DNA of 64,000 bases from Anaeramoeba ignava BMAN (Eukaryota > Protista > Anaeramoebae): positions 1-64,000 of the forward strand of contig JAPDFW010000027.1 of the NCBI GenBank assembly GCA_028826165.1. The letters run 5' to 3'. The position numbers and the translations under genes are program-made. This document shows, piece by piece, positions 5,093-52,700 of the stretch (positions within the stretch are counted from its first letter, which is position 1; the number at the start of each line of letters is the position of its first letter). Under the pieces are notes generated by a model. That model ran no database searches, was not told where the DNA came from, and saw nothing but the letters and a program-made list of their open reading frames with translations.

Positions 5093-8000
5093 ATGAAAAA
5101 AGAAACACAAACATCAAGACTTCAACTTTTTTTTGTGAAAAACAGCGATGGTTTTATGAACATTGTTTTTGTATTATCATTAATATGGTTTACAGCAACA
5201 TTTTTTCAATGTGCAGTTTTTAGCGGAAGAGTATATTGCTCAGATTATACTTGTGATGTACCAGTTAAAGCTCCATTTTCACAATTAACACTCATAATAG
5301 TTGGTATGAATTTATCTTCTTTTTTTCTCACTTAATTTTTTCATTCAAATTTTTTAATTCGAAATTATTATTTTTTCAATTATTATTTTTTTAGGCGTTT
5401 GCTTTTATGTTGTTATTTTAATTATTTGTTTAATTGCTTTATTCTCTCCTGGTTATTGGCATCCAAATCCCAAACAGTAATTTTATTTTTCTTGTTTTGA
5501 TAATTGATATTTTTTTTTCAAAAAGACTTTTAAATAATTATTTTTTTTTTATTTTTTTTTCAATCATTTTATTGATGATTTTGTGATCTGAAAAATTTTT
5601 ATTGATAAAAAGAAAAATAATTATTTAAAAAATGTTATTGAAATTTTTCTTCTTTTCTCTTTTAAAAAGAGATTAATTACAAAAAAAAATAATTTTATTA
5701 TTTAAAAATTTATTTAAAAAAAATAAAAACAAAAAGATCAAAAGCATATGCAATGATTGTATTAACATTTCTACCTGTTTCTGGGATTCAATTAATAGTT
5801 CCTGAAGTTCATCGGTAAAAAAAATATTAAATATAGATTTAAAAGAAAAGGAAAAAAAAATTAAAAGGAATTGATTTGAAATTATTTTTTTTTTGAAATC
5901 ATGAATTAAATTATTCGAAAAAAAGAGGGTATGTTTTTACTTATTATACAGGAAATCGATATTCGATAGAAATTACACAATTATCAGGAAATTCAGCAAG
6001 AATGAATGTATCAAACTATTATTCTTCTTATGTTGATGGAATGGATGCAATGGTTGCTGTTTTTGAAGCTACTGGTGATGAAGAAGGCGTTTTCCAGCTT
6101 TCTACAGTAGCTAAAGAGATTTATAGAGATAAAGATAAAGGTCAGTATTTTAAAGTCGATTCTTCTATAGGTGATATTATTCGTGATATAAGTCATTTAG
6201 AAGATGGTAAATATTATATGTGGACTGTTCTTCCAGCAAAAATTGTAATTTTTATATAAAATTAAACAGAAAATTATTTATAAAATTATTTATAAAATTA
6301 AATATAAAATTATTTATAAAATTATTTATAAAATTATTAATAAAATTATTTATAAAATTATTTATAAAATTATATTATAAAATTATTTATAAAATTATTT
6401 ATTAAATTATTTATAAAATTAAATATTAAATTATTTATAAAATTATTTATAAAATTAAAATATTAAATTATATAAAATTATTTATAAAATTAAATATAAA
6501 ATTATTAATAAAATTATTTATAAAATTAAATATAAAATTATTTAAAAATTATTTATAAAATTATTTTAAAAAATTATTTATAAAATTATTTATAAAATTA
6601 TTTATAAAAATTATTTATAAAATTATTTATAAAATTATTTATAAAATTATTTATAAAATTATATAAAAAATATAAAAATTAATTTTAAATTTATAAAATT
6701 ATTTATAAAATTAATTATAAAATTAATTATAAAATTAAATATAAAATTATTTATAAAATTATTTATAAAATTATTTTATAAAATTATTTATAAAATTATT
6801 TATAAAATTATTTATAAAATTATTTATAAAATTATTTATAAAATTATTTATAAAATTATTATATAAAATTAATTATTAAATTAATTATAAAATTAAAATT
6901 AATAAAATTATTTATAAAATTATTTATAAAAATTAAATATAAAATTAAATATAAAATTAATTTATAAAATTAAATATAAAATTAAATATAAAATTATTTA
7001 TAAAATTAATTATAAAATTATTTATAAAATTATTTATAAAATTAAATATAAAATTATTTATAAAATTATTTATAAAATTATTTATAAAAATTATTTATAA
7101 AATTAAATTATAAAATTATTTATAAAATTATTTATAAAATTATTTATAAAATTATTTATTAAATTATTTATAAAATTAATTATAAAATTATTTATAAAAA
7201 AATAAAAATATAAAAATAAATATAATTAAATATAAAATTATTTATAAAGTTAATTAAAAATAAATAAAATTAATTATAAAATATAAATTTAAATAAAATT
7301 ATTAATAAAATTAAATATAAAATAAATATAAAATTATTTTATAAAATTATATATAAAATTATTTATAAAATTATTTATAAAAAATTATTTATAAAATTAT
7401 TTATTAAATTATTTATATTCAAAATTATTTATAAAATTAAATATAAAATTATTTATAAAATTATTTATAAAATTAAAATTATATAAAATTATTTATAAAA
7501 TTATTTATAAAATTAAAATAAAATTATTTAAAATTAAATATAAAATTAAATATAAAATTATTTATAAAATTAAATATAAAATTATATAAAATTATTTATA
7601 AAATTATTTATAAAATTATTTATAAAATTAATTATAAAATTAAATATAAAATTATTTATAAAATTATTTTTATAAAATTAAATATAAAAAAAAATATAAA
7701 ATTAATTATAAAATTATTTATAAAAATAAAATTATTTATAAAATTATTTATTAAATTATTTATAAAATTATTAATAAAATTAAATATAAAATTATTTATA
7801 AAATTAAATATAAAATTATTTATAAAATTATTTATAAAATTAATTATAAAATTAATTTATAAAAATTTATAAAAATTTATAAAATTAAGTATTTATAAAA
7901 TTAAATATAAAAATTATTTATAAAATTAAATTAAAAATTATTTATAAAATTATTTATAAAATTATTTATAAAATTAAATATAAAATTAAACATAAAATTA

Positions 8001-9818
8001 TTTATAAAATTATTTATAAAAATTATTTATAAAATTATTTATAAAATTATTTATAAAATTAATTATAAAATTATTTATAAAATTAAATATAAAATTATTT
8101 ATAAAATTAAATTAAATATAAAATTATTTATAAAATTATTTATAAAATTAAATATAAAATTATTTATTTAAATTATTTATAAAATTATTTATAAAATTAT
8201 TTATAAAATTATTTATAGAAATTATTTATAAAATTATTTATAAAATTATTTATAAAATTAAATTAAAATTAATTATAAAATTATTTATAAAATTAAATAT
8301 AAAATTATTTATAAAATTAAATATAAAAATTATAAAATTATTTTATAAAATTATATATAAAAATATATATATTTTATAAAATTAATTATAAAATTATTTA
8401 TAAAAAAATTAAAATATAAAATTAATTATAAAATTAATTATAAAATTATTTATAAAATTATTTATAAAATTATTTTATATAAAATTATTTATAAAATTAT
8501 TTATAGTACATAAAATTATTTATAAAATTATTTATAAAATTTTATAAAATTATTTTATAAAATTATTTATAAAATTATTTATAAAATTAATTATAAAATT
8601 AAATATAAAATTAAATATAAAATTATTTATTAAATTATTTATATAAAAATTATTATAAATTATTTATAAAATTATTTATAAAATTAATTATAAAATTATT
8701 TTATTAAATTATTTATAAAATTATTAATAAAATTATTTATAAAATTATTTATTAAATTATTTTATAAAATTATTTATAAAAATTAAATATAAAATTATTT
8801 ATAAAATTATTTATAAAATTATTTATAAAATTAAATATAAAATTATTTATAAAATCATTTATAAAATTAATTATAAAATTATTTATAAAATTAATTATAA
8901 AATTATTTATAAAATTATTTATAAAATTATTTATAAAATTAAATATAAAATTATTTATAAAATTATTTATAAAATTATTTATAAAATTATTTATAAAATT
9001 ATTTATAAAATTATTTATAAAATTATTTATAAAATTATTTATAAAATTAATTATAAAATTAATTATAAAATTAAATATAAAATTAATTATAAAATTATTT
9101 ATAAAATTATTTATAAAATTATTTTATAAAATTATATATAAAATTATTTATAAAATTATTTATAAAATTATTTATAAAATTATTTATAAAATTAATTATA
9201 AAATTAATTATAAAATTATTTATAAAATTATTTATAAAATTATTTATAAAATTAAATATAAAATTAAATATAAAATTATTTATAAAAATTAAATATAAAA
9301 ATTATTTATAAAATTAAATATAAAATTATTTATAAAATTAAATATAAAATTATTTATAAAATTAAATATAAAATTATTTATAAAATTAAATATAAAATTA
9401 TTTATAAAATTAAATATAAAATTAATTATAAAATTATTTATAAAATTATTTATAAAATTATTTATAAAATTAAATATAAAATTATATATAAAATTAAAAT
9501 ATAAAATTATATATAAAATTAATTATAAAATTAAATTATAAAATTAAATATAAAATTATTTATTAAATTATTTATAAAATTATTTATAAAATTAAATATA
9601 AAATATAAAATTAAATTATAAAATTAAATATAAAATTATATATAAATTTTTAGATTTCGGATAAATCTTATGTTGCTGATCTTCCTTGGTCTGGATCTAA
9701 ATATTCTTATACTTTCTCAAATCTAAAAAAAATTACAGGAGGATTTCTTGACAGAAGAGCATATCGTTTATGCAAATGGCATTCTAGTTATGGTTGTTCT
9801 GATTCAATTCATTCTTAA
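5093..9818 (+). CDS. Uncharacterised protein of about 284 aa with roughly 3 N-terminal hydrophobic segments and a soluble C-terminal domain; exons 5093-5303, 5395-5476, 5737-5814, 5926-6244, 9654-9818
   Basis: All four GT-AG junctions join in phase to give one ORF ending at TAA 9816-9818. No family recognised. Confidence 0.75.
6253..9645 (+). repeat. Intronic 12-mer satellite (ATAAAATTATTT)n of about 3.4 kb filling intron 6245-9653
   Basis: Near-pure A/T tandem array with variants ATAAAATTAAAT, ATAAAATTAATT and ATAAAATTATAT. Confidence 0.95.
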
Positions 9819-10139: not shown

Positions 10140-13034
10140 TTATTTTTGATTTTCTTTATCTTTATCTTTATCTTTTTGAAGTAAATTATTTTGTCCAGTC
10201 TCATTTGAATCACTTTGCATACTTGTAACAACATCTTCCCAATCTGAAGTAGTTGAAGGAGAAAGTTTTTCAGTACTATCATTTGAATAATTTTCAAAAT
10301 CTTGAGTTTGAATATCTGGAGATTGTGTATCATCAGTAAAAAGACGAACCAAATTTGGAATTCTTTTTTCTTTTTGATTATTATTATTATTGTTATTATT
10401 GTTATTGTTGTTATTGTTATTATTATTATTATTATCGCTTTTATCTTCATCTTGGTTATCAAGTGATAAACTGTTGTCATCTGAATGTAATTCTATTGAT
10501 CTTAAATTGAAAAGTTTTGCTTTTTCTTGATTTAATGAAAGATGATGTGAATTTTTATAACCAAGAGTCATTGCTCTTGTCATTGGAGAATAAGTTGAAT
10601 AAGTCGAACGAAGAGACTTGCTTTCTTGTTGAGGAACTTCAGATCTATATGGATGAGTTCCTTTGCTCCAACTTAGTTGATCGATTTTTTTGCGCATTTC
10701 TTGACTTGTTAATTGTTTTCTTAATGGTTTTAATTTTTCATCCATTGCTGATTTTCCATCAGTTGATGATTTTGGTTTTGGTTTTATTTTTGTTTTTGTT
10801 TTTGTTTGATTAATCATTTTAGCTCTTTTTTTTGCTCCAATAAGTGATATTCTGTTTAGGTTAACTCCAGGATGATTTAATAATTCTGTGTATTGATTTC
10901 TCATTTGAAGGAATTTCCGTTTTTCTTCTGGATTCATTTTCTCTTTTATTTTTTGTTCTTTTATTGTTTCAAAAAGTTGAATTAAACGATATTCATTTAG
11001 TGAAAGATCTCGAACGAAATGTTTGATTATCCATTGATCAATATCACTTGATTTAATTTGATTTAATTTAATTTTAATTTAAATTTTAATTTTAATTTTG
11101 ATTTAATTTGATTTAATTTAAATTTAAATTTAATTTAATTTGATTTGATTTAATTTAAATTTAAATTTAATTTGATTTGATTTAATTTGATTTGATTTAA
11201 TTTAAATTTAATTTGATTTAATTTTATACTGCCATAAATGAGACCAACCAGATAAACCACTTGTACCAGAAACAATTAAACAAAAAGCTTCTTGAATAAA
11301 AGGATAAATTTTCCTAAAAATTGAGATTGAAATTTTATCAATCTTTGTAGCTCTTTTAATATGAAACCAACGCAAAATATGACGAATCAAACCACCCAGA
11401 ATAAAAATAGTAACGAAAATAAGAACCAAAGTTGCACTAATCAAAGTATTTTTAGCCTCAATAGAATCCGACAATGTAAAAACAAGAGCAAAAGCAATAG
11501 CACCTCTCAAACCACTAAAAGCCATTACGAATTGGTTTTGGTAAGATATTTTAGAAGAGCGCTTTATATTGTCAAGCCAAGTGAGACCGAAAATGATCAC
11601 AAAGCGATAAATAAGACAGAAAATAATAGTTAAAGCAGTAAAAGAGCCTGAAAATTTATGTTGAAATTTTGAACCGCTATTGAAGAAAAATTGGAACGCA
11701 AAATAAATCCCCAAGTAAACAAAAACAATGGCCTCAGTTGTTGAAGCCAAGGCCTTAATACTTCTTTCCAAAACAAGTGAGACAGTATGTTCGAGATTGA
11801 TTTGAGAATATCTGGAGATGATAATCCCGCAGAAAAGAACCGATACAATTCCACTCAAGCTGAATAATTCTGCCAAAATAAACGATAAAAACCCAAACGA
11901 AATGACAATAATGGGTTCAAAGAGCTTGATTGGGCTTGTGTACTTTGTGACCCAAGTGCACATCAACGCAACAACAACTCCCACTAATGTTCCGCCTATT
12001 GCGACAATGAAAAAACGTGCAATCGCAAGAAATGGGACACCGGCAGTTACTTTTACATTTGTAAGTGATTCAAACAGTTGAAACAGTACAATTGATACTG
12101 CATCGTTAAGTACGGATTCTCCAAACAAAAGCATGTTTAATGTTTCGTTTACGTGTATTGATTCAAATATTGCTAATACTGCTACTGGATCTACTGCTGA
12201 GATTAAAGACCCAAATACTAATAGTTCTATAAATGAAATTTCAAATGAAAATATCTTTCTAAGTCCATAAAGTGATCCTGCAACTAAAAATGTATTGAGT
12301 ACGGTTCCAAGTACTGCATATAAAAGAATTGTTCTAATATTATTAAAAAAATAGTTTTTATCCAGAAAATATCCAGCCTAAATGAAATATTAAATGAAAT
12401 TTTAAATGAAATTTTAATTTTAATTGAAATATTAATTTTAATTTTAATTTTAATTTTAATTTTAATTTTAATTTTAATTTTAATTTTAATTTTTGATCTT
12501 TGATTAAATTAAGTTAATTGTTGTCAAATTTAAACTAAATTGCTTTCATCAAAAATTTATATTTTATTTTTTAAAAAAACTCAAAAAAAAAAAAAGTTTT
12601 TAAATGATGATTGGAAAAAAAAAATTATAATAAAAATCAACTTAAATTCTTTGAAAATGAATTAAAAAATTCTTAAAAAAATTATTAATTAAAAATTTGT
12701 AGAAAGAAAAAAAATTTTTTTTTGAAGATTAATTAAAGAATAATTTAATTTCTTTTCTTACTTCAAAAATTATTGGAGGAATAAGAATTAAAAAAAATAA
12801 ATTTGTGCTAAATCCAAATATTAAATGCTCAGAAAGTCCAAATCCTAATCCAGTAACTCCAAGAATAACTCCTAATAAAACTATAATTGCACTTTCTGGT
12901 AAAATTTTAATTGAATATTTAACAACTAACATTCTAATAAGAATAAGAATAAAAAGTGCAAAAAATCCTAATATCAAAAATTCGATTGTTGAATTAAAAT
13001 GAACAAAAATAACTCGGAATTTATCTTCTGACAT
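10140..13034 (-). CDS. NHE: Na+/H+ exchanger (CPA1/SLC9A NHE family); exons 13034-12762, 12377-11230, 11046-10140
   Basis: Motifs LIPPIIFEAGY, FGSLISAVDPVAVLAIFE, FGESVLNDAV and SGLRGAIAFAL; in-phase GT-AG junctions; low-complexity C-terminal tail with poly-N. Confidence 0.93.
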
Positions 13035-13316
13035 TTTAAAAAAAATATTTTTTTTGATTAAATTAATTGATTTAAAAATTTGGAAGAGAGAAAAAAAATG
13101 AAAAAAATGAAAATTAAAAAAAAAAAGAAAAAGAAAAAGAAAAGAAAAAGAAAAGTTAATTTTTAAAAGAAAACTGCATCTCTTGATTGATTTTTTTTTT
13201 CGATTACTAAAAAAACGAAACTAAGAAAATTAATTTTGATTTTGGTTCTTTTTGATTAATTGATATATTTTTTTGGATATATAAATGAAAGGAGTAAAAG
13301 AATTGAAAAAATCAAA

Positions 13317-15960
13317 TTAAACATTTTGATGTTCATCATTTTTAATTAAAGATTCTCTTTCAGAATTTGTTTCTGAATTTTTTTCATCAATTTTGATCAA
13401 GAAATCTTTTTCAGAATTTGTTTCATCTTCTTCTTTTGTAACATTTTCTTTTAAAAGGAAATGAGAAGATTTTTCCAATTCAGGAGATTTAATAAAAAGC
13501 ATTAAAAGAAAACCAATAAAATAAATGAAACCAAGAGTAATAAAAACAAGAGCAGGGAAATTAATATATTCTGCGAATGAAAAATAAGAACCAGCAAGAA
13601 AAGGGCCAAGTGAACGAAACAAAGAACCGATTGATCCAGCAGATCCTTGAATCATTCCTTGATTTCCAGGTCCAGAGGCATTGCTAATCATTGTAAGAGC
13701 GTTTGAGAGCAAAGACATCATTCCAAAGCAATAAGGAAGAATAAAGATTGAGAAAACAACCCATTTCCATATTGCATGTGATTCCAAATGACCGATTATT
13801 AATCGTGAAATTGGGAAACATTGATGCGCAAACAGCAGTTACTAATGACCCTAAAAGAAATAATTTTCTCACTCCAATTTTTTTCACTAATTTGTTATAC
13901 CATAGAAGTTCATAAATAGTTGTTCCTATTCCAAAAACAATAAAAATAACTCCTGTTTCATTTGGTGAAAATCCTAATCCTCCTTCGCTATAATCAAGTG
14001 TAGCATATAAAATCATGAGAACGAAAACCGATCCATTTGAGAAATCACATAAAGAAAAGACGATTACAAGTTTTCGAAGTAATCGATTTGCCCAAACATA
14101 TTTAAATCCTTCTTTTAAATTTTTAAATTTATGGACAAAGGGTTCAACTTCTAAAAATATTTTGATAAAATAAATAATATTTAAATTGATTTAATTTGAT
14201 TTAATTTAATTTAAATTGATTTAATTTAAATTGATTTAATTTAATTTGATTTAATTTAATTTAATTTGATTTAATTTGATTTAATTTAATTTAATTTAAT
14301 TTGATTTAATTTGATTTAATTTGATTTAATTTAATTTAATTTAATTTAATTTAATTTAATTTAATTTAATTTGATTTAATTTAATTTGATTTAATTTAAT
14401 TTTTGATTTGATTTAATTTAATTTGATTTAATTTAATTTGATTTAATTTAATTTAATTTGATTTAATTTGATTTAATTTAAATTTGATTTAATTTAAATT
14501 TGATTTAATTTAATTTAATTTGATTTAATTTGAATTTGATTTAATTTAATATGATTTGATTTAATATGATTTGATTTAATTTGATTTAATTTGATTTGAT
14601 TTGATTTGATTTAATTTAATTTAATTTAATTTGATTTAATTTAATTTAATTTGATTTGATTTGATTTGATTTGATTTGATTTAATTTGATTTAATTTGAT
14701 TTGATTTGATTTAATTTGATTTAATTTGATTTAATTTGGAATTTGATTTGATTTAATTTGATTTAATTTGATTTGATTTGATTTAATTTAATTTGATTTA
14801 ATTTAATTTGATTTGAATTTGATTTAATTTAATTTGATTTAATTTAATTTAATTTGATTTAATTTAATTTAATTTGATTTGATTTAATTTGATTTGATTT
14901 GATTTAATATTTGATTTAATTTGATTTGATTTGATTTGATTTAATTTGATTTGATTTGATTTGATTTGATTTGATTTAATTTGATTTGATTTGATTTGAT
15001 TTGATTTGAATTTGATTTAATTTAATTTAATTTAATTTGATTTAATTTGATTTAATTTGATTTAATTTGATTTAATTTGATTTGATTTAATTTGATTTAA
15101 TTTAATTTAATTTAATTTGATTTAATTTTAGATTTAATTTGATTTAATTTGATTTAATTTGATTTAATTTAATTTGATTTGATTTGATTTGATTTAATTT
15201 GATTTAAATTGATTTAATTTGATTTAATTTAATTTTAATTTTCACCTTTAGGCATTAATCCTTTATCAGAAAAAAATATATATGTAATTATTGCAACAAT
15301 AAATACAATAATAGCTCCAATAATACATGGAAATAAATATGGATTTTTTTTAAAACTTTCAACACCAAAATCATGTCCAAAAAAAATTGAAACAGTAGCA
15401 GAACTTAATCCTCTAAAAAAAGCATAACAAGCGCTCATTGCAGCAAAAAGAAAAGATCTATAGTTATTAAGAACACCTGATGTTAAATCACTAAAAACAG
15501 CTTTTGTTACAACTTCTGAACCATCAGTTAATCCAGCAATAACTTGAAGTATAATTAGTAGAGGAACAGACCAAGCAAATCCAAATAATAATAATGTAAT
15601 TGAAACCATAAAAAGACTGAATATGATAATTGGTTTTCGACCAAATTTATCAGAAAAATATCCCAAATAAAAACATGAAAAAAAAGAACTTGCTTTAAAA
15701 GAACCTTCAATTACACCTGAAAGAACTCCTACATTTTTTTTGGAAATGTGAAATCTTTTTTTAAGCATTTTAGGAACAAAAGGATAAACAAGAGTTCCTC
15801 CATATTCATCAAAACCAATTGCTGTAAGAAGAATTGCTGCTACTTTTTGTGCTTTTTTAATTGCTATTTTTGCGTTGCTTTTGGTTTCTTCTTCTTCTGA
15901 TTTTTCTTCTAATTCTTCTTGTTTTTCTTTTTCTGATGTGTTTATATTTATTAAAGACAT
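13317..15960 (-). pseudogene. MFS transporter paralog A (ZIFL/MFSD10/TetA-like); exons 15960-15246, 14150-13317; 1-nt frameshift near 13815 (pseudogene or sequencing error)
   Basis: MFS motif A GYFSDKFGRKP. Alignment to paralog B shows ttgggaaaca (10 nt) versus gtggaagta (9 nt), which splits ORFs 13684-14016 and 13317-13787. Confidence 0.8.
14185..15235 (+). repeat. Pentamer satellite (ATTTG/ATTTA)n filling MFS-A intron 14151-15245
   Basis: Direct repeats; the sense strand (AAATC/AAATT) has essentially no G. Confidence 0.95.
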
Positions 15961-16369
15961 TTATTATTTATTATTTATTTCAATCTGTGAATATTTTTTT
16001 ATCTTGTGAATTTTGTTTTATTGTCTTTAATTTGGTTAAAATAAAGTTAAAAAAAAATAAATTTTTCGATTTGGAAGAAGAAAAAAATTTTTTTTTGAAG
16101 TTTTTGCTGACTCACTTTGATCGTAAAAATTTTTTTTTTTTTCAAAGGGATAAGTTTATTTAATTAGATTTTCAAAAGGAAATTTCTTTTTTGCTTTTTT
16201 TAAAATTTTTTGCTTTTTAATTTGTTTTATTCTCAATCAAAAAAAAAAAAAAAAAAAAGAAGAAAAGAAGAAAGAAGAAAGGTGGGATTAGTTTAATTAA
16301 AGTTTTAATTTAGAAAAAAAATTTTTTTTTTAAAGATTAATTAAAGAATAATTTAATTTCTTTTCTTAC

Positions 16370-16642
16370 TTCAAAAATTATTGGAGGAATAAGAATTAAA
16401 AAAAATAAATTTGTGCTAAATCCAAATATTAAATGCTCAGAAAGTCCAAATCCTAATCCAGTAACTCCAAGAATAACTCCTAATAAAACTATAATTGCAC
16501 TTTCTGGTAAAATTTTAATTGAATATTTAACAACTAACATTCTAATAAGAATAAGAATAAAAAGTGCAAAAAATCCTAATATCAAAAATTCGATTGTTAA
16601 ATTAAAATGAACAAAAATAACTCGGAATTTATCTTCTGACAT
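16370..16642 (-). pseudogene. Duplicated orphan NHE exon 1 with intact ATG, ORF and splice donor
   Basis: Near-identical to 12762-13034 (one aa difference, S15L); GTAAGA donor at 16369; no duplicated exons 2-3. Confidence 0.85.
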
Positions 16643-16953
16643 TTAAAAAAAATATTTTTTTTTGATTAAATTAAAAAAATTTGGAAAAAAGAAAAATTAA
16701 GTTTGAAAAGAAAACTTCCACTTTTCATTCATTTTTTGATCTATATTCTAAAAAAAAAAAAAGAACAAAGAAAAAGGAAATAAACAACAAAGAAAAAGAC
16801 ATCAAAAATTAATTTTCTTTTGTTTCTTTTGTTTCTTTTTTTTTTCCTCTTTGTTCAATTGATTAATTGATTAATTGATTAATTGATTAATTGATTAATT
16901 GATATATTTTTGGATATATAAATGAAAGGAGTAAAAGAATTGAAAAAATCAAA

Positions 16954-19593
16954 TTAAACATTTTGATGTTCATCATTTTTAATTAAAGATTCTCTTTCAG
17001 AATTTGTTTCTGAATTTTTTTCATCAATTTTGATCAAGAAATCTTTTTCTAAATTTGTTTCATCTTCTTCTTTTGTACCATTTTCTTTTAAAAGGAAATG
17101 AGAAGATTTTTCCAATTCAGGAGATTTAATAAAAAGCATTAAAAGAAAACCAATAAAATAAATGAAACCAAGAGTAATAAAAACAAGAGCAGGGAAATTA
17201 ATATATTCTGCGAATGAAAAATAAGAACCAGCAAGAAAAGGGCCAAGTGAACGAAACAAAGAACCGATTGATCCAACAGATCCTTGAATCATTCCTTGAT
17301 TTCCAGGTCCAGAAACGTTGCTAATCATTGTAAGAGCGTTTGAGAGCAAAGACATCAATCCAAAGCAATAAGGAAGAATGAATGGTGTGAAAACAACCCA
17401 TTTCCATATTTTATGTGATTCCAAATCTCCGATTACTAATCGAGAAAGTGGAAGTATTGATGTGCAAGTAGCCATTACAAATGACCCTAAAAGAAATAAT
17501 TTTCTCACTCCAATTTTTTTCACTAATTTGTTATACCATAAAAATTGGAAAAGAACTGAGCCAACACCATATATTGCAAAAAAAACTCCTGTTTCATTTG
17601 GTGAAAATCCTAATCCTCCTTCGCTATAATCAAGTGTAGTATATAAAATTATGAGAACGAAAACCGATCCATTTGAGAAATCACATAAAGAAAAGACGAT
17701 TACAAGTTTTCGAAGTAATCGATTTGCCCAAGCAAATTTGAATCCTTCTTTTAAATTTTTAAATTTATGGACAAAGGGTTCAACTTCTAAAAAGATTTTG
17801 ATAAAATAAATATTATTTGAAATAAATATTTAAATAAATAATATTTGAAATAAATAATTAAATAATTTTTGAAATAAATAATATTTGGAATAAATAATTA
17901 AATAATATTTTGGAATAAATAATATTTTGAATAAATAATTAAATAATATTTGGAATAAATAATTAAATAATATTTGAAATAAATAATATTTGAAATAAAT
18001 AATATTTGGAATAAATAATTAAATAATTAAATAATATTTGAAATAAATAATTAAATAATTAAATAATATTTGAAATAAATAATATTTGAAATAAATAATA
18101 TTTGGAATAAATAATTAAATAATTAAATAATATTTTGAAATAAATAAGATTTTGAATTAAATAATATTTTGAAATAAATAATATTTGAAATAAATAATAT
18201 TTGGAATAAATAATTAAATAATTAAATAATATTTGAAATAAATAATATTTGGAATAAATAATATTTTGGAATAAATAATATTTGAAATAAATAATATTTG
18301 GAATAAATAATATTTGAAATAAATAATATTTTGGAATAAATAATATTTGGAAATAAATATTATTTTTGAAATGAATAATATTTGGAATAAATAATATTTG
18401 AAATAAATAATTAAATAATTTTTGGAATAAATAATTAAATATATTTGAAATAAATAATATTTGAAATAAATAATATTTGGAATAAATAATATTTGAAATA
18501 AATAATATTTGGAATAAATAATTAAATAATTTAAATTTAATATTTGAAATAAATAATATTTTGGAATAAATAATATTTTGAAATAAATAATATTTGGAAT
18601 AAATAATTAAATAATTAAATAATATTTGAAATAAATAATATTTGGAATAAATAATATTTTGGAATAAATAATTAAATAATTAAATAATATTTGAAATAAA
18701 TAATTAAATAATATTTGAAATAAATAATTAAATATATTTGAAATAAATAATTAAATAATATTTGAAATAAATAATATTTGAAATAAATAATATTTGAAAT
18801 AAATTTGATTTAATTTGATTTGATTTAATTTGATTTGAATTTGATTTAATTTGAATTGAATTTGATTTAATTTAATTTAATTTTCACCTTTAGGCATTAA
18901 TCCTTTATCAGAAAAAAATATATATGTAATTATTGCAACAATAAATACAATAATAGCTCCAATAATACATGGAAATAAATATGGATTTTTTTTAAAAATT
19001 TCAACACCAAAATCATGTCCAAAAAAAATTGAAACAGTAGCAGAACTTAATCCTCTAAAAAAAGCATAACAAGCGCTCATTGAAGCAAAAAGAAAAGATC
19101 TATATTTATTAAGAACACCTGATGTTAAATCACTAAAAACAGCTTTTGTTACAACTTCTGTGCCATCAGTTAAACCAGCAATGATTTCAAGAAGAATAAG
19201 AGACGTAACAGACCAAGCAAATCCAAATAATAATAATGTAATTGAAACCATAAAAAGACTGAATATGATAATTGGTTTTCGACCAAATTTATCAGAAAAA
19301 TACCCCAAATAAAAACATGAAAAAAAAGAACTTGCTTTAAAAGAACCTTCAATTACACCTGAAAGAACTCCTACATTTTTATTGGAAATGTGAAATCTTT
19401 TTTTAAGCATTTGAGGAACAAAAGGATAAACAAGAGTTCCTCCATATTGATCAAAACCAATTGCTGCAAGAAGAATTGCTGTTACTTTTTGTGCTTTTTT
19501 AATTGCTATTTTTGTTTTGCTTTTGGTTTCTTCCTCTTTTGATTTTTCTTTTTGTTTTTCTTTTTCTGATGTGTTTATATTTATTAAAGACAT
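16954..19593 (-). CDS. MFS transporter paralog B (intact); exons 19593-18888, 17786-16954
   Basis: GYFSDKFGRKP motif; intron 17787-18887 joins in phase (G|AA) and exon 2 reads open to the stop. Confidence 0.9.
17805..18800 (+). repeat. About 17-mer satellite (GAAATAAATAATATTT-type) filling MFS-B intron 17787-18887
   Basis: Direct repeats unrelated to the pentamer in paralog A. Confidence 0.95.
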
Positions 19594-19814
19594 TTATTAT
19601 TTGTTATTTATTTCAATCTGTGAATATTTTTTTATCTTGTTATTATGTTTTTTTTTTTGTTTTCAAAAGAGAAAACTGAAAAAAAAAAATTATAAAAAAA
19701 ATAAATTTTTCGATTTGGAAAAAAAAAAATTTTTTTTATAAATAATTCCTTCTAATTCAAATTTTGATCGTGGTTTTTTTTTGAAAAAGAAATCATTTAT
19801 TCAATTTAAATTTC

Positions 19815-20968
19815 CAAAATCCAAAATTAAAATCAAAATTAAAATCAAAATTAAAATCAAAATCAAAATCAAAATCAAAATATAAATCAAAATCAAAATC
19901 AAAATTAAAATCAAAATCAAATTCAAAATTAAAATCAAAATCAAAATTAAAATTAAAATCAAAATTAAAATCAAAATATAAATCAAAATCAAAATTAAAA
20001 TTAAAATCAAAATTAAAATCAAAATCAAAATTAAAATCAAAATCAAAATCAAAATTAAAATCAAAATTAAAATCAAAATCAAAATCAAAATCAAAATCAA
20101 AATCAAAATATAAATTAAAATCAAAATCAAAACCAAAATTAAAATCAAAATCAAAATCAAAATCAAAATTAAAATCAAAATTAAAATATAAATCAAAATC
20201 AAAATCAAAATCAAAATCAAAATTAAAATCAAAATCAAATTCAAAATCAAAATCAAAATTAAAATCAAAATCAAAATCAAAATCAAAATCAAAATATAAA
20301 TTAAAATCAAAATCAAAATCAAAATCAAAATCAAAATCAAAATCAAAATAAAAATCAAAATTAAAAATCAAAATCAAAATTAAAATCAAAATCAAAATCA
20401 AAATTAAAATTAAAATCAAAATCAAAATCAAAATCAAAATCAAAATCAAAATTAAAATCAAAATCAAAATTAAAATTAAAATCAAAATTAAAATCAAAAT
20501 CAAAATTAAAATTAAAATCAAAATTAAAATTAAAATCAAAATCAAAATTAAAATCAAAATCAAAATCAAAATTAAAATCAAAATTAAAATCAAAATCAAA
20601 ATCAAAATTAAAATCAAAATTAAAATCAAAATTAAAATCAAAATCAAAATTAAAATCAAAATCCAAAATCAAAATTAAAATTAAAATTAAAATCAAAATT
20701 ATAAATAAAAATTAAAATTAAAATCAAAATCAAAATCAAAATCAAAATATAAATCAAAATCAAAATCCAAAATTAAAATCAAAATTAAAATCAAAATTAA
20801 AATCAAAATCAAAATCAAAATCAAAATCAAAATCAAAATCAAAATCAAAATTAAAATCAAAATTAAAATTAAAATCAAAATCCAAATTAAAATCAAAATT
20901 ATAAATAAAAATTAAAATCAAAATTAAAATTAAAATCAAAATATAAATCAAAATATAAATCAAAATTA
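19815..20968 (+). repeat. Intergenic (AAAATC/AAAATT)n hexamer satellite between the divergent MFS-B and MED13 genes
   Basis: Direct repeats; source of the ILIL/FDFD pseudo-ORFs. Confidence 0.95.
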
Positions 20969-21100: not shown

Positions 21101-24100
21101 ATGGAAATTGAAAATGAATCATTATTTGGTTTTAAAACAAATATTTTTAAAATTGTAAATAAAATTAAAAAAATAAATTTTTTTTTGAATTAATATTTTT
21201 TTTACAAAAAACAAAAACAAAAACAGAAAAAAATAGAAGAAATTAAATGGAGAATTTATACATTAAAAACAAATGAAGAAACAATTAATTTAGAATCAAT
21301 TTTAAAGAATTTTGGGTTTGAAAATAAAGATTGTATTTTTCCAACAACAAGTTTACCGTTTGTTATTGGGAGATTAATAATTCAAAAGACATCATGTTTA
21401 TGGAGTTGGTTTCATAATCCACAAAATTCAAAATTAAATCAATTGTGGATATTTGATGCTGATGGTTTAATTTCTGATTATACTTCTTTTCTTGAAAATG
21501 AAAATGAAAATGAAAATGAAAATGAAAATGAAAATGAAAATGAAAATGAAAATGAAAATGAAAATGAAAATGAAAATGAAAATGAAAATGAAAATGAAAA
21601 TCAAAATGAAAATGAAAATGAAAATGAAAATGAAAATGAAAATGAAAATGAAAATGAAAATGAAAATGAAAATGAAAATGAAAATGAAAATGAAAATGAA
21701 AATGAAAATGAAAATGAAAATGAAAATGAAAATCAAAAGAATCAAAATCAAGAATTTTTTAAAAATGTTAGAAAAATTTTGCGAGAATATTTTAGTTGTT
21801 CAAAAGGAAAATTTATAGTGAGTTCAAGAGAAGTTATTTCGGAAGAAAATCAAGAAAATCCTATTCATTTAAAATTAGTATCACTTATGCTGATTGAAGC
21901 TTTTAATAATCTTATTGAACTGTAAGATATAAATATAAAATTAAAATTAAAATTAAAATTAAAATTAAAATTAAAATTCATTTTAAAATTTAAAATTAAA
22001 ATTCATTTTAAAATTTAAAATTAAAATTAAAATTAAAATTAAAATTAAAATTAAAATTCATTTTAAAATTTAAAATTAAAATTCATTTTAAAATTAAAAT
22101 TAAAATTAAAATTCATTTTAAAATTAAAATTCATTTTGAAATTAAAATTCATTTTAAAATTAAAATTCATTTTGAAATTAAAATTCATTTTGAAATTGAA
22201 ATTCATTTTGAAATTAAAATTCATTTTGAAATTAATTTTTTTCCGATTTTCATTCAAACAGAAAATTAGAAAAACAAAATTGGTTAAGACTTGGAAGCTG
22301 GTTTGTAAACATCCGCCAACAAATATTTGGAAAATGGAACGCAGCACCATTGCCAATGGAGGCTTTTAGATTAAACTTTTTCTTTGAGAAAACAAAACTA
22401 TGCTTACAATTTGTGCACAACCACTTACTTCTTCGGAAGCTGACAGAAAGCGATGCCGACAACACAACTGTATTCATCTCACCATTTGAAACAAAAGCGC
22501 GAATAAACAAGAAAAGAAACCTGAAGCCAACATTTGTAGAAACAACACCAGAACTTGAATGGATGCTTTTCGGGTTAAGTCACAACTTATCGCGACAAAA
22601 CATTGGGACAGAGAACCAAGTAAACATCACACCCGAGGGGTCCAACATCACACTCACAGTCCCAAAGACTCGGGTGTTTGTGCCGATGACACAGAAGAAG
22701 GCTGTATTGCCGTTGACGACAAGGAACAAGGAAATTTACGAAAATTTCACGCGGTTCACGCTCAACGATTCATTGCTCACAGAACTGCTGTGCTCAAACG
22801 GAGACGGCGAAAGTATCGGGCTTGATAAGCAGTCGATGCTTCTTGATTGCGGATTGAATGATCTTGCAACATGGCCGAATGCGCTGCTTGACATTAGCTT
22901 CCATAGTGAGGCATTTCCTAAATCACTAGGTTTGACAGGAGCAGAAAAAACAACCCAAAAAGAAACACTTTCGGGCGTGGAATGGTTCAATGAGAACCGC
23001 AAGAAGCGCAAAAGCCATCTGGAGCAGGAGGAAAAAGAGCGAGTGAACTTCAAACGAAGAATGAGAATGCTCCAAATAGCAAAAAGCAAACAAATTAAAA
23101 ATCGATCGGAGATCCAGTCAGAAATGACAGCTATTCGGGACACAAATCAAGAATCTGGCAAAAACGAACAGCAATTAACCCACAATGGAGATCAAGTCCA
23201 GACAAGAGTGTCGGAAAGACAGAAAGAAACGGCAGGTGGCACAAAGTTACGTTCGTTATGGGATCCGTTCACAAAACTTCTTGAGGAGAAACCGCGACTT
23301 CTGAAGTTCGAGCCCAGAGAAGGTGCTGTGTTAGACGGAGCAAGACAAACCACAGCAGTTTGGCAAACAGGAAGATGGAAGGACAGCGGAGACAAGACGG
23401 CGCATAAAAAGACTTTCGAGACAAGAAGACATGCGGTTTATTCTCCACAGATGTCAACCAATTCGGCTGTGATTGTGAACAAAACAGAGGGAATGGTGCG
23501 CAGTCCTAGCGGAAGAGGTGGATGGGCAAATCCACGCAAGACACTTGGCGGCGCAATGGGGAAGAGTAGTGCAAAACATTCTGTGCAGACAGAGATGGGT
23601 GGCGATCTTTCTTTGAAACAAACAAGTCCGTTGGAAAATGCAAGAGTGCGCATCGGCGGCCAAGAATATGTCAGTAGTGTGCTTATGCTTCTGCAGACGG
23701 TAGACAGCTCATTGGAGGATCCGTTGGATATTCTTGCAAAGGTCCCGAGCGCAGTGGGAGAAGATGGGGTTGTGGGAATGAGTGAGAATGCGAGACGCGT
23801 TGGTATGCAAAAATCTCATCAAACAATCCCATCGCCGTTATCCAAACAGAAGAAAATCGGGACAAGCCAACGGTCCAACTACGCAAAAACACTGCCTGTT
23901 CTGAAGGAGATCGTCAAACAGCTCCAGGTGGTGTATGATCAAAAGCAATGCCACGAAGGATGTGTTGATGCGGATCACAACGGAACTTGGACTTTGGTCG
24001 CAAACGATAAACAATCACAACAAGCTCGTGAAGTTCTGGAAGATATTTTTGGGGGACTCTCTCGAAAGGATCATTTAGGGACAAAAGGGGGAATCTGGCG

Positions 24101-26078
24101 ACGTTTGGAGATCCCGAACTTTCTATCTGGATACGACACAGAATGGGTGGAAATTCTACCGTCTTTCGCAATGTCTTATTGGCAAGCTGTTCTTCTTGAG
24201 CCGTATCAGGACCGTAGAGACGTCGAGTACTTCGTAGTCGCCCCGCAGGACACAACACTTAGGTTCTCTGCGGATATGTTCTTCCGCAATCTGGGGTCGA
24301 TTTACGAGTCCTGTTTTCTTGGGAAACACAGAGAATTCCGCAACTTCGATTACTCCACACCTGACATCGATGGCGAGCTCACAGACATAGCAAAAGAGAA
24401 GCCCTCTCCATCACTGCTCTCTCGGTCATTCGGACCTGCAGACTTCTTGGAAGACAAAACACCGCGCTCGTCATTGGGCGATATTAGCTCAATAACGCTC
24501 TCCGAAGATCTAGTCGTTTCCAAAAACTCAGAAATCACTGATATCACAGCACCTCCAACAAACTCGCTGCACTTCCAGAAGAAGGAAGTCCTTGCACACT
24601 ACGCAAACACATCGCGCAGGATCGTCAACTGTCTGAAACGTCGCAGCAAATATAATAAATACCAGTCAAAAAACGCCAGAACAGTTATTTATGTTGTGGA
24701 TCCTAATATGCCCCAAAGCGATGTGACAGGATTCGATCAAAAAGACTCGCGAAACAAGATCAGTCTTCTCGATATCTACCAAGCGCTCTTCCCGCTGCTC
24801 GAACTCGAGAAGAAAAAGGTTGCGTTTCTCAGCGGAAGACGGGCACTAGAAGACGGAAAAAAGCAAGACAGCAACCAGTCCGAAAAGAGCATTTCCAAAA
24901 AAACATCGAATCAACTTCAATCAACCCCATCAAAAAACAGCACAAAGGGGATCGAAAGCAAGGACGAGAAATATATCACTCGCGAGGGGATTGTAGGCGG
25001 TGAGAAGCACCAGACAACGCCGAGCAAAAACCAGACAGGGAACGTTGTAGTTCAAGTGGTTGATCTTTCGGAGATTCTTCACCAACAAACAAATTTCGAG
25101 CGAGAACTCAAATCAATGTGCTTCTCAGTGTATTCCAAAGCAAGCAAATACAAACACCACTCGCGTCCTCCATGCGTTCTTTCCTTCCGTCCCAACAAGA
25201 CCCTCTCTGCCCAATCCCCGCACGCAGAACAGCTTCCCGAAGACGAACTGTTTCTCCTGCGCAACATCGATCCAACTCCCCAAATTTCCCAAATGACTCT
25301 TCATTGCTGTTATTCATCCACAAACTCTATTATTGTCTATACTTGGATCGACTCCTTTGGCGAGCTCATTTCTTCCTCACTCGAACCCCCCAAATCCCTT
25401 TTTCATGTCTTCAAAAAAATCCTTCGTGACGGTCTTTCTCTTCTTCATGTCTCAGACCCCCATTTGACCCCACTTTCCGAGAACAGACCTGACCCCCAAA
25501 AAATCTGTCAAATTCGGTTCGCCATTTCAAAAGACGGATCTCTTCCAGAACGTGAACTGCAAGAATGGAGTCATGCCTTCCGCGATCTCTTTGGCTCCCC
25601 CCAAAACCCTAATCCTTCCTGTTCGCGCCTTGGTCTATATCAGCTTCATTCATGGTCTGTTATGGCCATCAACGACGTCCAATTTGGATTGCAGTTATTT
25701 TTCGATAACAAAGACTCTCATTTCGGTCAGTCATCTGTTCCTGAGACTCATCTCATTATCCCAAAGAATCCTCCTTACTTCCTTTCCCAAATTGAAACTC
25801 CAAATGCTCTTAAACCTCTTCAAGTATCTTATCTTGTTGATATTGACAATTCGTTTTTAAAATGTCTTTCAATCGAGCTTTTCCATTTTTCTCTTTTCCA
25901 AGTTGATGAGAAATCTGATCCGCCAAGTGATTCTGATCTCAAGAAAGTTTTGGAAGAGTTGAGTTCGGAATTATTTGCTTTGTCTTGGCTTACTGCTTCT
26001 CCTGTTGCTCCAATGAGAGCTTCTACTCTTCCTGTTCATCTTTATATTATAAGAAGAATTCTTTCCTTTTTAAATTGA
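21101..26078 (+). CDS. MED13: Mediator kinase-module subunit 13; exons 21101-21154, 21227-21921, 22262-26078
   Basis: N-terminal TNIFKI..IKWRIY, FNNLIE..WLRLGSWFV; central ILPSFAMSYWQAVLLEPY..RDVEYFVVAP; C-terminal LSWLT...RASTLPVH. All correspond to MED13 conserved blocks and the junctions are in phase. Confidence 0.88.
21494..21733 (+). repeat. (GAAAAT)n of about 40 copies within MED13 exon 2, in-frame poly-EN
   Basis: Nearly perfect hexamer array. Confidence 0.95.
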
Positions 26079-28301: not shown

Positions 28302-29411
28302 TTAATCAAAATGGCAATCTTTGCAATACCAAGCATCTGTTGCAATTCCACAATTATTGTTTTTATCTCTTGACATCCAAATATAACCTTGCATTCCCCA
28401 AGATGAACCCCAAGAATTTTGAACAATCCAATACTTATCATCACCTGAATTACAATATCCAACAACAAGAACAGTATGATCCAAATTAGTAGAACTGCAA
28501 GCAGGTTCATAATAAATTCCACTCACATACATTTCGAAACTAGCATGACTTGCATCAATAGCAGAAGAAAGTGGACCATATTGAGCACAAATTTGAGCCA
28601 TTGCTGTTTCATTACCAGTTGGAACTTGGAAACATTCGATTGAAAAATTTATTGGTTTACATGAACTTGATTTGCATGCTTCTGTCATTCCAGTATATGG
28701 ATAATCTGCTGCACTGCATGATCCTCCTTGTTCTTTTTCCCATTCGAAAACTTGATCAGGCCAACCTCCATTACATCCATATGACTTATCATCACAATCA
28801 ATAATTTCTTGAATTGATAAATAGTCTAATTTTCCATTATCAATTGCTAAACATGCTTCAATAACTTCCAATGCCGTTATTGCCCAACATGAACCACATT
28901 GTCCTTCATTGACAACATCTGGTACAACTCCTTTGTCTCTCCAATCAACACAATCATCTGTTGGTAAATTTGGATCGTATTCATATTCTTTCGTTATTTG
29001 TTTTCTTTTAGGTAATTCGTTCATTAAATATAATTCTTGATATTCTTTGTTTGTTAAATCTGTAAATTGATTTATTCCAACTATTTTATTTTAATCCAAA
29101 AAAAAAGAGAAAAAAGAATTTTTGAATAGGTGAATTTAATTAAAGAAATGAATAAGAAAATTTTTTGCTTTTTTCTTTTAATTTTTATTAATTACGCTGA
29201 AATTTAAAATTAAAATTTTGAAATTAAAATTAAAATAAAATTTTGTTTAAATTATCTTTAAAAACTGAAAATCGATAAATTTTTCATTTGGTGAATAAGC
29301 TTTATTAAATTTCTTTTGGAAAGCTTTAAACATCAATTCTTCTTTACTTTTGGCACATCCAACAAATGAAATGAATAATAAAATGAAAAGAGCTAAAATA
29401 AAAACTTTCAT
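28302..29411 (-). pseudogene. Cathepsin L-like paralog B; exon 2 (29080-28302) intact, exon 1 (29411-29196) disrupted
   Basis: Intact catalytic domain (EGQCGSCWA, LDHTV, QNSWG). Exon 1 has a 1-nt homopolymer deletion near 29281, and 29206-29240 is replaced by AAAATT-like repeats. Confidence 0.75.
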
Positions 29412-36700: not shown

Positions 36701-38240
36701 TTTTACAGGAATTGGAAGTAATATTCTCAAAAAAATGGGAGTTGATGTTGAAAGTTGGGAATATTGGGTTTGCTTTTATTAAATTATTTTTATTTCTTTT
36801 GTGATTTATTTTTATAATTATTTTTTTAGAAAGTAAATCAATTTTCTTTAATAGTTCTTTTTATTTTATAAAAAATTAAAATTTTTTATTTGATTTTAAT
36901 AGGAATATTCGAAATTACCAAAAGATCTTTTAGCAAATGAGTTTGTAGAACAAATTTTATTCAAAATATTTAAAACATTCAAAATATTCAAAATATTTAA
37001 AATAAATATCCAAAATATTCAAAAAATAAATATCCAAAATATCCAAAATATTTAAAATATTCAAAAATAATATATAAAAATATTTATAAAAATATAAAAT
37101 AAATATTCAAAATATTTAAATAAAATATTCAAAAAAATATTCAAAATATCCAAAATATTCAAAATATTCAAAATATTCAAAATAAATATTCAAAATATTT
37201 AAAAATATCCAAAATAATCAAAATATCCAAAATATTCAAAAAATATCCAAAATATTCCAAAATATTTATAATCAAAATATTCAAAATATTTAAAATATTC
37301 AAAATAAATATCCAAAAATATTCAAAATATCCAAAATAAATATCTAAAATAAATATTTAAAATATTCAAAATATTTAAAAATATCTAAAAATATTTAAAA
37401 TAAATATTCAAAATATTTAAAAATATCCAAAATATTTATAATAAATATATTTAAAATATTCAAAAATATCCAAAATATCCAAAAATAATCAAAATAAATA
37501 TCCAAAATATTTAAAATATCCAAAATATTTATAATAAAATATTTAAAATATTTAAAATATTTAAAAATATCCAAAATATTCAAAATATTCAAAATAAATA
37601 TTTAAAATAAATATCCAAAATAATCAAAATAAATATTCAAAATATTTAAAATATTCAAAATATCCAAAATATTTAAAATATTCAAAAATATTTAAAATAT
37701 TCAAAATATTTAAAATATTTAAAATAAATATCCAAAATATTTAAAATAAATATCCAAAATATTTAAAATAAATATCCAAAATAATCAAAATATTCAAAAT
37801 ATCCAAAATAATCAAAATATCCAAAATATTCAAAATATTTAAAATATCCAAAATATTTCAAAATAAATATTCAAAATATTTAAAATAAATATTCAAAATA
37901 TTTAAAATAATATCCAAAATATTTCTTTAGTTATTTCATTCTGGATTTGGCTGTTATTATTGGATCTTTTCTAGCTGCTTCTTATATGAAATCTTTTGGA
38001 AAAAGTCAATCATTTAATCCAATATCTTGGGTTGGAGGAATTTTCGGAGGAATTTTCTTAGGATTTGGAAGTAGATTGGCTGGTGGATGTAATATTGGAG
38101 CTCTTACTTCTGGAATTGTATCTTGGAGTGTAACTGCGTTTACTTGGTATGTTTGTGCAATGTGTGGGAATTTAGTTGGAATGTATCTTCGTCCTATTTT
38201 TAAAATTCCAACAAGTCCTACTCCCAAAAAACGAAATTAA
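33761..38240 (+). CDS. yeeE: YeeE/YedE (Sulf_transp, thiosulfate transporter-like) membrane protein, multi-exon; clear exons 33761-34096, 34197-34341, 36364-36767, 36903-36940, 37931-38240; middle exons garbled
   Basis: Motifs GFGYTLKRARFGYTSHFR, FGIGQQLGDCCASG, WGVMG..GVDVESWEYW and GGIFLGFGSRLAGGCNIGA. A 14-bp tandem duplication at 36653-36680 causes an apparent frameshift. Confidence 0.85.
34372..34980 (+). repeat. (AAATAT/AAATCT)n satellite in the YeeE intron starting at 34342
   Basis: Direct hexamer repeats. Confidence 0.9.
36960..37922 (+). repeat. About 10-mer (CAAAATATT/CAAAATATC)n satellite in YeeE intron 36941-37930
   Basis: Direct repeats, G-free. Confidence 0.9.
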
Positions 38241-49756: not shown

Positions 49757-52700
49757 ATGAGTCAAGACTTTATTAAAAACCAACAAAATTCCATTTGGAA
49801 ACAACAAGAAAACGGAAACGGAAATGGAAATGGAAATGGAAAAGAAAATGAAATAAAACAACAAGAAAAAAATGTTTCGTTAAAAACAACCCCAAAAAAA
49901 CAATTGAATTCAATTAAATTAGAATCAATAGAAAATGATTCTAATCCCATTAATAAAAGAACCAATAACGAATCAAAAGCAAATTCAAATTTAAAAACAA
50001 AAGCAAATCCACCTCCTTTACAATTTCAATTTTCTGCAAGAAATGATAATGTGGATATTTCTTATACCCAAAAAAACAACAACAATAAAATTATATATAA
50101 AATTATATATAAAATTATTTATAAAATTATATATAAAACAACAACAATAAAATTATATATAAAATTATATATAAAATTATTTATAAAATTATATATAAAA
50201 TTATTTATTAAATTATTTATAAAATTATTTATAAAATTATTTATTAAATTATTTATTAAATTATTTATAAAATTATTTATAAAATTATTTATAAAATTAT
50301 TTATAAAATTATATATAAAATTATATATAAAATTATTTATTAAATTATTTATAAAATTATTTATAAAATTATTTATAAAATTAAATATAAAATTAAATAT
50401 AAAATTATTTATAAAATTGTTTATAAAATTATATATTAAATTATTTATAAAATTATTTATTAAATTATTTATAAAATATATTAAATTAAATATAAAAATT
50501 TATAAAATTATTTATAAAATTATTTATAAAATTATTTATAAAATTATATTTATAAAATTATTTATAAAATTATTTATTAAATTATTTATAAAATTATTTA
50601 TAAAATTAATTATAAAATTATTTATTAAATTATTTATAAAATTAATTATAAAATTATTTATAAAATTATTTATAAAATTATTTATAAAATTAAATATTAA
50701 ATTATTTATTAAATTATTTATTAAATTATTTATAAAATTATTTATAAAATTAATTATAAAATTAATTATAAAATTATTTATTAAATTAAATATAAAAATT
50801 ATTTATAAAATTATATATAAAATTAAATATAAAATTATTTATTAAATTTATTTATTAAATTATTTATTAAATTATTTATTAAATTATTTAAATTATTTAT
50901 TAATTTTTATATAAAATTATATATAAAATTATTTTATTAAAAAATTATATAAAATTATTTATAAAATTATTTATAAAATTATTTATAAAATTATTTATTA
51001 AATTATTTATTAAATTATATATAAAAATTATATATTAAATTATTTATAAAATTATATATAAAATTATTTATTAAATTATATATAAAATTATTTATTAAAA
51101 TTATATATAAAAATTAAATATTAAATTATTTATAAAATTATATATAAAATTATTTATAAAATTATTTATAAAATTAATTATTAAATTATATATTAAATTA
51201 TTTATAAAATTATTTTATAAAATTATATATAAAATTATATATAAAATTATATATAAAAAATTATATATAAAATTATTTATTTAAATTATTTATAAAAAAA
51301 TTATAAAATTAATTTATAAAATTAAATATAAAATTATTTATTTATAAAATTATATATAAAAATTATTTATAAAATTATTATTAAATTATATATAAAATTA
51401 TATATAAAATTAATTATTAAATTATTTATAAAATTAATTATAAAATTATTTATAAAATTAAATATAAAAATTATTTATAAAATTATTATTTATAAAATTA
51501 AATATAAAATTAAATTATAAAATTATTTATAAAATTATATATAAAATTAAATATAAAATTATTTATAAAATTATTTATTAAATTATATATAAATTATTTA
51601 TATAAAATTATATAAAATTATTTATAAAATTAAATATAAAATTATTTTATAAAATTATTTATAAAATTATTATATAAAAATTATATATAAAATTTATATA
51701 AAATTAATATAAAATTATTTATATAAAATTATTTATAAAATTATATATTAAATTATATATATAAATTATTTATAAAATTATATATTAAATTATTTATAAA
51801 ATTATATATATAAAAATTATATATAAAAATTATTTATAAAATTATTTATTAATTTTTATAAAATTATATATTAAATTATATATAAAATTATATATAAAAT
51901 TATATATAAAATTATATATAAAATTATATATATTAAATTATTTATATAAAATTATTTATAAAATTAAATATAAAATTAATTATTAAATTATTTATAAAAT
52001 TATTTATAAAATTATTTATAAAATTATTTATAAAAATTATTTATTAATTATTTATAAAATTAAATATAAAATTAAATATAAAATTAAATATAAAATTATA
52101 TATAAAAATTAAATATAAAAATTAAATATAAAATTTCATATATAAAATTATTTATAAAATTATATATTAAATTATTTATAAAATTATATATATTAAATTA
52201 TATATAAAATTATTTTATAAAATTATTTATAAAATTATTTATAAAATTATTTATTAAATTATTTATTAAATTATTTATTAAATTAAATATAAAATTATTT
52301 ATAAAATTATTTATAAAATTATATTTATAAAATTATTTATAAAATTATTTATTAAATTATTTATTAAATTATTTATTAAATTATTTATTAAATTATTTAT
52401 AAAAATTATTTATTAAATTATTTATTAAATTATTTATAAAATTATTTATAAAATTATATATAAAATTATTTATAAAATTATTTATAAAATTATTTATAAA
52501 ATTATTTATAAAATTATATATAAAATTATATATAAAATTATATATAAAATTATATATAAAATTATATATAAAATTATATATAAAATTATTTATAAAATTA
52601 TTTATTAAATTATTTATAAAATTATATATAAAATTATATATTAAATTATTTATAAAATTATTTATAAAATTATTTATAAATTTATTTATAAAATTATTTA

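Follow-up and report, generated by a model that had tools for sequence, protein, structure and literature searches.

Unrelated satellites fill two paralogous introns of near-equal length in Anaeramoeba ignava, with rapid array turnover and a most likely coincidental match in size

The concerted evolution of tandem duplicates by gene conversion is an established process. Motif-changing intronic arrays are also already known, from intronic repeat loci at which the motif differs between alleles, such as the pentanucleotide in an intron of human RFC1 (PMC6612533); the same is true of satellite introns, in the form of the gigantic satellite-containing introns of Y-linked genes in Drosophila (PMC6508621), and of the conservation of intron length, together with the concept of "intron delay" (PMC3283306, PMC5026260). 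Here we describe two paralogous introns of the anaerobic amoeba Anaeramoeba ignava (strain BMAN), each the single intron of one of two tandemly duplicated genes for transporters of the major facilitator superfamily (MFS), designated MFS-A and MFS-B. They are encoded in the first 64,000 nt of contig JAPDFW010000027.1 (assembly GCA_028826165.1), a 64-kb stretch referred to below as the window, and have nearly the same length despite being filled with unrelated satellites. A preliminary description of this DNA had seen in them a candidate for an undescribed system of length-constrained spacer introns. The best explanation in our view, to which we give a probability of roughly 75%, is that these are ordinary U2-type GT-AG introns in tandemly duplicated MFS genes, whose arrays turned over independently under a filter against G on the sense strand, with the exons kept alike by gene conversion and the equal length being coincidental.

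The MFS locus resembles the RFC1-type loci in that one intronic site carries different motifs in different copies, with expansion from short local tracts and a gene that is still spliced. It differs from them in that the comparison is between paralogs and not alleles, one of the motifs is a 16-mer, and the arrays are the normal state throughout the genome and not a rare disease allele. With the introns of the Drosophila Y it shares the composition of spliceosomal introns almost wholly of simple satellite, which is transcribed and removed; however, the Drosophila introns are megabases in size, heterochromatic, and found in a few testis genes, whereas the MFS introns are of about 1 kb and belong to ordinary genes in a 43-Mb protist genome. 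Intron delay, in which length rather than sequence is conserved for some genes, is an existing form of the idea put forward in the preliminary description, but it is based on many orthologs and species, in contrast to one paralog pair and one counter-example here, and with no link to timing for an MFS transporter. The paper on the A. ignava genome reports intron counts, lengths, and GC content, and does not mention tandem repeats in introns in its text or supplements (PMC11550330); for this reason, the general phenomenon of intronic tandem repeats merits a systematic description, which this single match in length does not.

All features of the duplicated genes described here are on the minus strand. 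The MFS-A intron spans positions 14151–15245 and the MFS-B intron positions 17787–18887; both are of phase 1, and both read GTGAAA...TTTTTAG, with the GT-AG ends of spliceosomal introns. Their lengths in the assembly are 1095 and 1101 nt, but because this is a Nanopore assembly with single-base indels in MFS-A, the difference of 6 nt is not a measurement, and what can be supported is that both are about 1.1 kb long. Each interrupts its gene after codon 235 plus 1 nt, and the common codon, the common phase, and the homologous ends identify them as introns at the same position. The homology reaches 35 nt inward from the side of the 3′ splice site and about 85 nt from that of the 5′ splice site, and the interiors, of 976 and 981 nt, are unrelated between the two copies. 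The near-equal length and the shared ends noted in the preliminary description are thus borne out.

Splicing was checked with k-mer contigs from four runs, which were placed on the repeat-free stretch between the arrays and break at the array edges. For MFS-A, a contig of 1004 nt (X3, record 17) joins positions 15253–15942 of exon 1 to an A-type exon 2, which shows 25 differences from B over 309 positions, exactly the count found between A and B. For MFS-B, a contig of 151 nt (X5, record 24) connects the terminal 69 nt of exon 1, a part identical in both copies, with exon 2 of B, with 0 mismatches where A would give 3. The letters between the matched parts fit the predicted junction in both contigs. 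This shows that both introns are removed at the predicted junctions and that both MFS genes are expressed, which provides the confirmation by RNA that the preliminary description had called for.

The sense strand of either intron contains exactly three G, two of them in the initial GTG and one in the final AG, so that GT and AG each occur only once in roughly 1,100 nt; this G-free interior is a solid result for these two MFS introns. We suggest that only motifs unable to make splice sites, that is, motifs with no G on the sense strand, can expand inside introns. A tolerance for such motifs only would explain why each intron of 1.1 kb has kept its single GT and AG and is correctly spliced. The intron ends and the exon flanks are not recurrent in the genome of A. 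ignava itself, and thus give no sign of a mobile intron-generating element (introner or transposon); the own-genome matches to intron A are to its satellite interior, mostly at query positions 29–1091.

Intron A is filled with a 5-mer satellite (14179–15241) with the sense units AAATT (106 times) and AAATC (96 times), for which Tandem Repeats Finder (TRF) gives a period of 5 and 210 copies. The array in intron B (17804–18802) is formed by a 16-mer family, sense CAAATATTATTTATTT, with variants that carry 8-nt inserts (TRF period 16, 63.5 copies). In both, TRF and a census of the units show tandem-repeat arrays with units running head to tail and one motif family per array. The preliminary description had recognized two unrelated fillers, which is correct, but had put the unit of the second at about 17 nt. 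It had also reported a short seed of each filler in the other copy, and these are indeed present. An 81-nt remnant of the 5-mer adjoins the 5′ splice site of intron B (18803–18883), as seen by TRF, where the 16-nt and 5-nt repeats lie at 17804–18804 and 18802–18883, and by alignment to the end of the A array, and a lone 16-mer unit is found in intron A (14168–14183) by alignment to B and in the unit census. There are 19 occurrences of the 16-mer core in B and a single one in A, at sense position 1064 and at a distance of 32 nt from the 3′ splice site. An origin of the 16-mer in place from the 5-mer is rejected, given that the two arrays, read on one strand, are biased in opposite directions between A and T and have no common register.

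Elsewhere in the genome, the 5-mer is found at 39 or more other loci with 85–90% identity, in merged arrays of 244–2129 bp with no preferred size, and 16-mer-like arrays are found at dozens of loci with 72–82% identity. Both fillers are common genome-wide satellite families and are not private to the MFS introns. Of the earlier proposal that the interior was rewritten from a local seed after a recent duplication, one part holds: the duplication is fairly recent, the introns are homologous, and their interiors were replaced. A purely local seed does not fit fillers that occur genome-wide. The 5-mer, as ATTTA/ATTTG, was also observed inside an intron of the neighboring exchanger gene (11051–11224), as a dispersed satellite family.

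The exons of MFS-A and MFS-B are 93–95% identical at the DNA level, in agreement with the high similarity described before, and the synonymous divergence (dS) between them varies by block. Over the 46 codons of exon 1 that precede the intron, dS is 0, and over the 46 codons that follow it, 0.03; within exon 2 it then rises to 0.15–0.27 in the middle and falls to 0–0.02 at the 3′ end. Judged from the sequences, such a mosaic of dS values between 0 and 0.27 in adjacent 46-codon blocks indicates gene conversion between tandem copies, of which it is the usual mark. The MFS pair is like other cases of concerted evolution in these patches of zero dS next to patches of 0.15–0.27, and unlike them in that the intron interiors have not been homogenized, presumably since unrelated satellites cannot pair. 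The exon flanks bordering the intron are identical between A and B over 110 nt and 46 nt on its two sides, the first differences being at A 15356 and B 18998 on one side and at A 14104 and B 17740 on the other; because of this identity, the seeds may be the ends of conversion tracts that reached slightly into the intron, and they could equally be ancestral.

It is a solid result that a full array of about 1 kb was replaced while dS stayed at 0–0.27, and satellite turnover is therefore fast relative to substitution. After the duplication of a 3.6-kb unit, the array of each copy would have undergone a turnover of its own, for which replication slippage or unequal exchange is the presumed mechanism, with the outcome that the 5-mer became dominant in one copy and the 16-mer family in the other. 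The likeness of the exons would meanwhile have been maintained by purifying selection together with patchy gene conversion. What the evidence supports is that kilobase intronic satellites of a very AT-rich protist turn over fully within a dS of 0–0.27 with splicing still accurate, and these satellites may be restricted to motifs that lack G on the transcribed strand and so cannot give rise to splice sites.

The A. ignava genome has an A+T content of 81%, and AT-rich tandem repeats account for the enlarged size of many introns and spacers. Among the 5-mer arrays at the 39 other loci, 8 of the 741 possible pairs (1.1%) are within 6 nt of each other in length, and the 22 noncoding arrays of the window give 2 such pairs out of 231. 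Only one other paralogous intron pair is found in the window, that of two cathepsin genes; the intron with an AATTTT array measures 287 nt and the one without an array 115 nt, a 2.5-fold difference that confirms the counter-example named in the preliminary description. The comparison on which a length constraint can be judged thus consists of two pairs from one window, the MFS pair being matched, with a chance of about 1%, and the cathepsin pair unmatched. The arrays and introns of the window have continuous sizes from about 100 nt to 3.4 kb, including introns of 2.7 and 3.4 kb, and the 32,108 introns of the genome have a mode of 76, a mean of 300, and a maximum of 4168 nt (PMC11550330). This continuum, with upper limits of 3.4 kb for the window and 4.2 kb for the genome as a whole, leads us to reject a length ceiling near 1.1 kb or a quantization of lengths.

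The near-equal length is most likely a coincidence at a level of about 1 in 100 per pair, picked from a very large number of introns and arrays; with 32,108 introns in the genome, a single match of this kind is to be expected at some locus. The larger claims made for this match are therefore not upheld. That length was held during the exchange of the filling does not follow from one pair with a chance of about 1%, next to a cathepsin pair with a 2.5-fold difference. An undescribed system of length-constrained spacers would have a single pair to its credit, among arrays and introns that form a continuous series, and the periodic lengths that had been envisaged are likewise replaced by a continuum.

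Some observations weigh against independent turnover with a coincidental length. A hypermutable 1-kb array was completely replaced and yet the total length differs by 0.5%, whereas the short noncoding, nonrepetitive spacers of the same duplicated unit shifted by 4–11% (282 vs. 313 nt and 217 vs. 226 nt), a contrast that by itself is unexpected at the level of about 1%. The 1095 and 1101 nt seen despite unrelated interiors, the greater relative drift in length of the nonrepetitive spacers, and the expression and splicing of both genes are all compatible with length homeostasis, that is, with a sequence-indifferent spacer intron held at about 1.1 kb by selection or by a coupled gain and loss during the exchange of motifs. 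We nevertheless consider this quite improbable: it is seen in a single pair, the cathepsin introns of 287 and 115 nt do not conform to it, the same 5-mer spans 244–2129 bp at other loci with no size preference, introns of 2.7 and 3.4 kb are present in the same window, and the 6-nt figure lies inside the likely assembly error. We also know of no mechanism that ties the gain of one motif to the loss of another, which counts against it further. In a broader form, such sequence-blind homeostasis would give some long introns of A. ignava a length specific to their gene and unaffected by exchanges of the satellite filling, with transcription time or spacing as the object of selection, or else with expansion and contraction coupled to each other; in this form we regard it as highly improbable. 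If it were true that the sequence is exchanged at a fixed intron length, this would be a clear natural example of introns with a spacer function. The length could also have been inherited, from an ancestral intron that already measured about 1.1 kb at the duplication or the last conversion, the motif having changed in a few large and nearly cancelling steps. The identical exon flanks suggest that the intron ends shared one state until very recently, and the position of both introns far in the upper tail of the length distribution (mode 76 and mean 300 nt) is easier to understand if the ancestor was long. Yet a swap of about 980 nt requires the loss of some 200 units and the gain of some 60, there is nothing to make the two sums cancel, and the interiors are without homology, which leaves this origin a very small probability.

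The accuracy of the assembly bears on the same question. The source assembly (42.8 Mb in 147 contigs) was generated with ABruijn v1.0 from R9.4/R9.5 MinION reads and then corrected with Racon, Nanopolish, and Pilon, the last with 150-nt reads (PMC11550330); reads of this length are unable to correct a 1-kb satellite internally. In exon 2 of MFS-A, an extra base in a G run (window positions 13800–13830, near 13812) breaks the frame. An A-type contig from the independent run X5 over the same region shows 24 mismatches and no gap in 322 positions, against 25 mismatches and one gap in the assembly, and the extra base probably reflects an indel error of the assembly or a difference between strains rather than a pseudogene. 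This base, a comparable one-base fault in cathepsin copy 2 (exon 1), the early read types and assembler with a polishing step unable to correct the satellite interior, and the small size of the host contig (69,184 nt) all speak for an assembly effect, by which array lengths or the tandem layout were distorted in an early-Nanopore consensus, for example through mis-sized arrays or divergent alleles placed in tandem. We think this unlikely. Both exon versions and both junctions are present in k-mer contigs of other runs, and both copies therefore exist; arrays as long as 2.7 and 3.4 kb are resolved within the same host contig; and noise in the consensus should widen, not narrow, the difference between unrelated arrays. 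Independent turnover, with a match in length that is coincidental, accordingly remains the reading we prefer.

The MFS genes are part of a unit of about 3.6 kb present as a head-to-tail duplicate, with an offset of 3636–3642 nt between copies A and B in a self-BLAST of the window, where 12685–14185 pairs with 16293–17821 and 15162–16177 with 18803–19819. Based on this search and on the identities per segment, copy A extends over 12685–16177 and copy B over 16293–19819, and each contains exon 1 of a Na+/H+ exchanger-like gene and a complete MFS transporter gene. In copy A, the exchanger exon 1 (12762–13034; an open reading frame followed by a GTAAGA donor) is the expressed one: RNA contigs of about 2.09 kb carry variants of it, spliced at the end of the exon and joined to about 1.8 kb of downstream exons. 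Its duplicate in copy B (16370–16639), located between MFS-B and MFS-A and 96% identical to the expressed copy, is an orphan, which was found only in a DNA contig, the RNA contigs having the variants of the other copy only.

Exon 1 of MFS-A (15246–15960, with the ATG at 15960) is supported by its translation and covered by a transcript contig over 15253–15942; it is 92% identical to that of B in a search of the own genome. Exon 2 of MFS-A (13317–14150) was delimited from its frames and the alignment of A and B, the frame being broken by the one extra base near 13812. The MFS-B model is intact with 512 aa, translated from exon 1 (706 nt, 18888–19593, with the ATG at 19593) and exon 2 (16954–17786, with the stop codon at 16954–16956). 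Both halves of the protein match the Pfam family MFS_1 (PF07690), as found for exon 1 (E=3.8e-16) and for exon 2 (E=1.4e-18), which identifies the product as an MFS transporter; the Pfam and other searches were made with the exons one by one. A protein atlas added nothing on taxonomy or function. The product is named "zinc induced facilitator-like 1" by NCBI, where the annotated MFS-A is truncated to 393 aa.

The own-genome search found two close copies of the MFS gene only. A third MFS paralog, on contig C64 and with 39% identity, is without a clear intron at the site used in MFS-A and MFS-B, and the gap at this site resembles a low-complexity coding loop; the MFS paralogs on contig C113 and most of the cathepsin paralogs are apparently intronless. 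DNA searches of the own genome with parts of the window returned no recent intron-bearing paralogs, the output being dominated by matches to satellites and ankyrin repeats, and a protein search for MFS orthologs returned only the annotated, truncated MFS-A. Introns of the sister species would be uninformative because the average identity between the species is only about 37% (PMC11550330).

Several further features of the window were observed. In cathepsin copy 2, an A run in exon 1 (29195–29400) is one base shorter than in copy 1 and the frame is shifted, and about 29 coding nt just before the 5′ splice site are replaced by satellite-like AATTTT sequence; either decay of this copy or an assembly error may be the reason. 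The first 1.6 kb of the contig form a large imperfect palindrome of satellite-like sequence, in which 199–1586 pairs with 1588–248 at 71% identity, and which may be a real hairpin-like end or an artefact of long-read assembly. The two largest arrays of the window, at 6247–9647 (3.4 kb) and 50085–52735 (2.65 kb), have a common 12-nt unit, ATAAAATTATTT, although they are 40 kb apart, and are dissimilar in length (3.4 vs. 2.65 kb). Another satellite, at 36958–37924, is built of the 9-mer TATTCAAAA with a higher-order period of about 130–139 nt, and is found with 77–81% identity at many loci on many contigs. A single open frame of 1242 aa at 22350–26078 has a G+C content of 40–45%, compared with about 19% for the genome; with a Pfam medPIWI MID domain and a weak match to the Med13 C-terminus, its product looks, from these domain matches, like a putative Mediator subunit 13.

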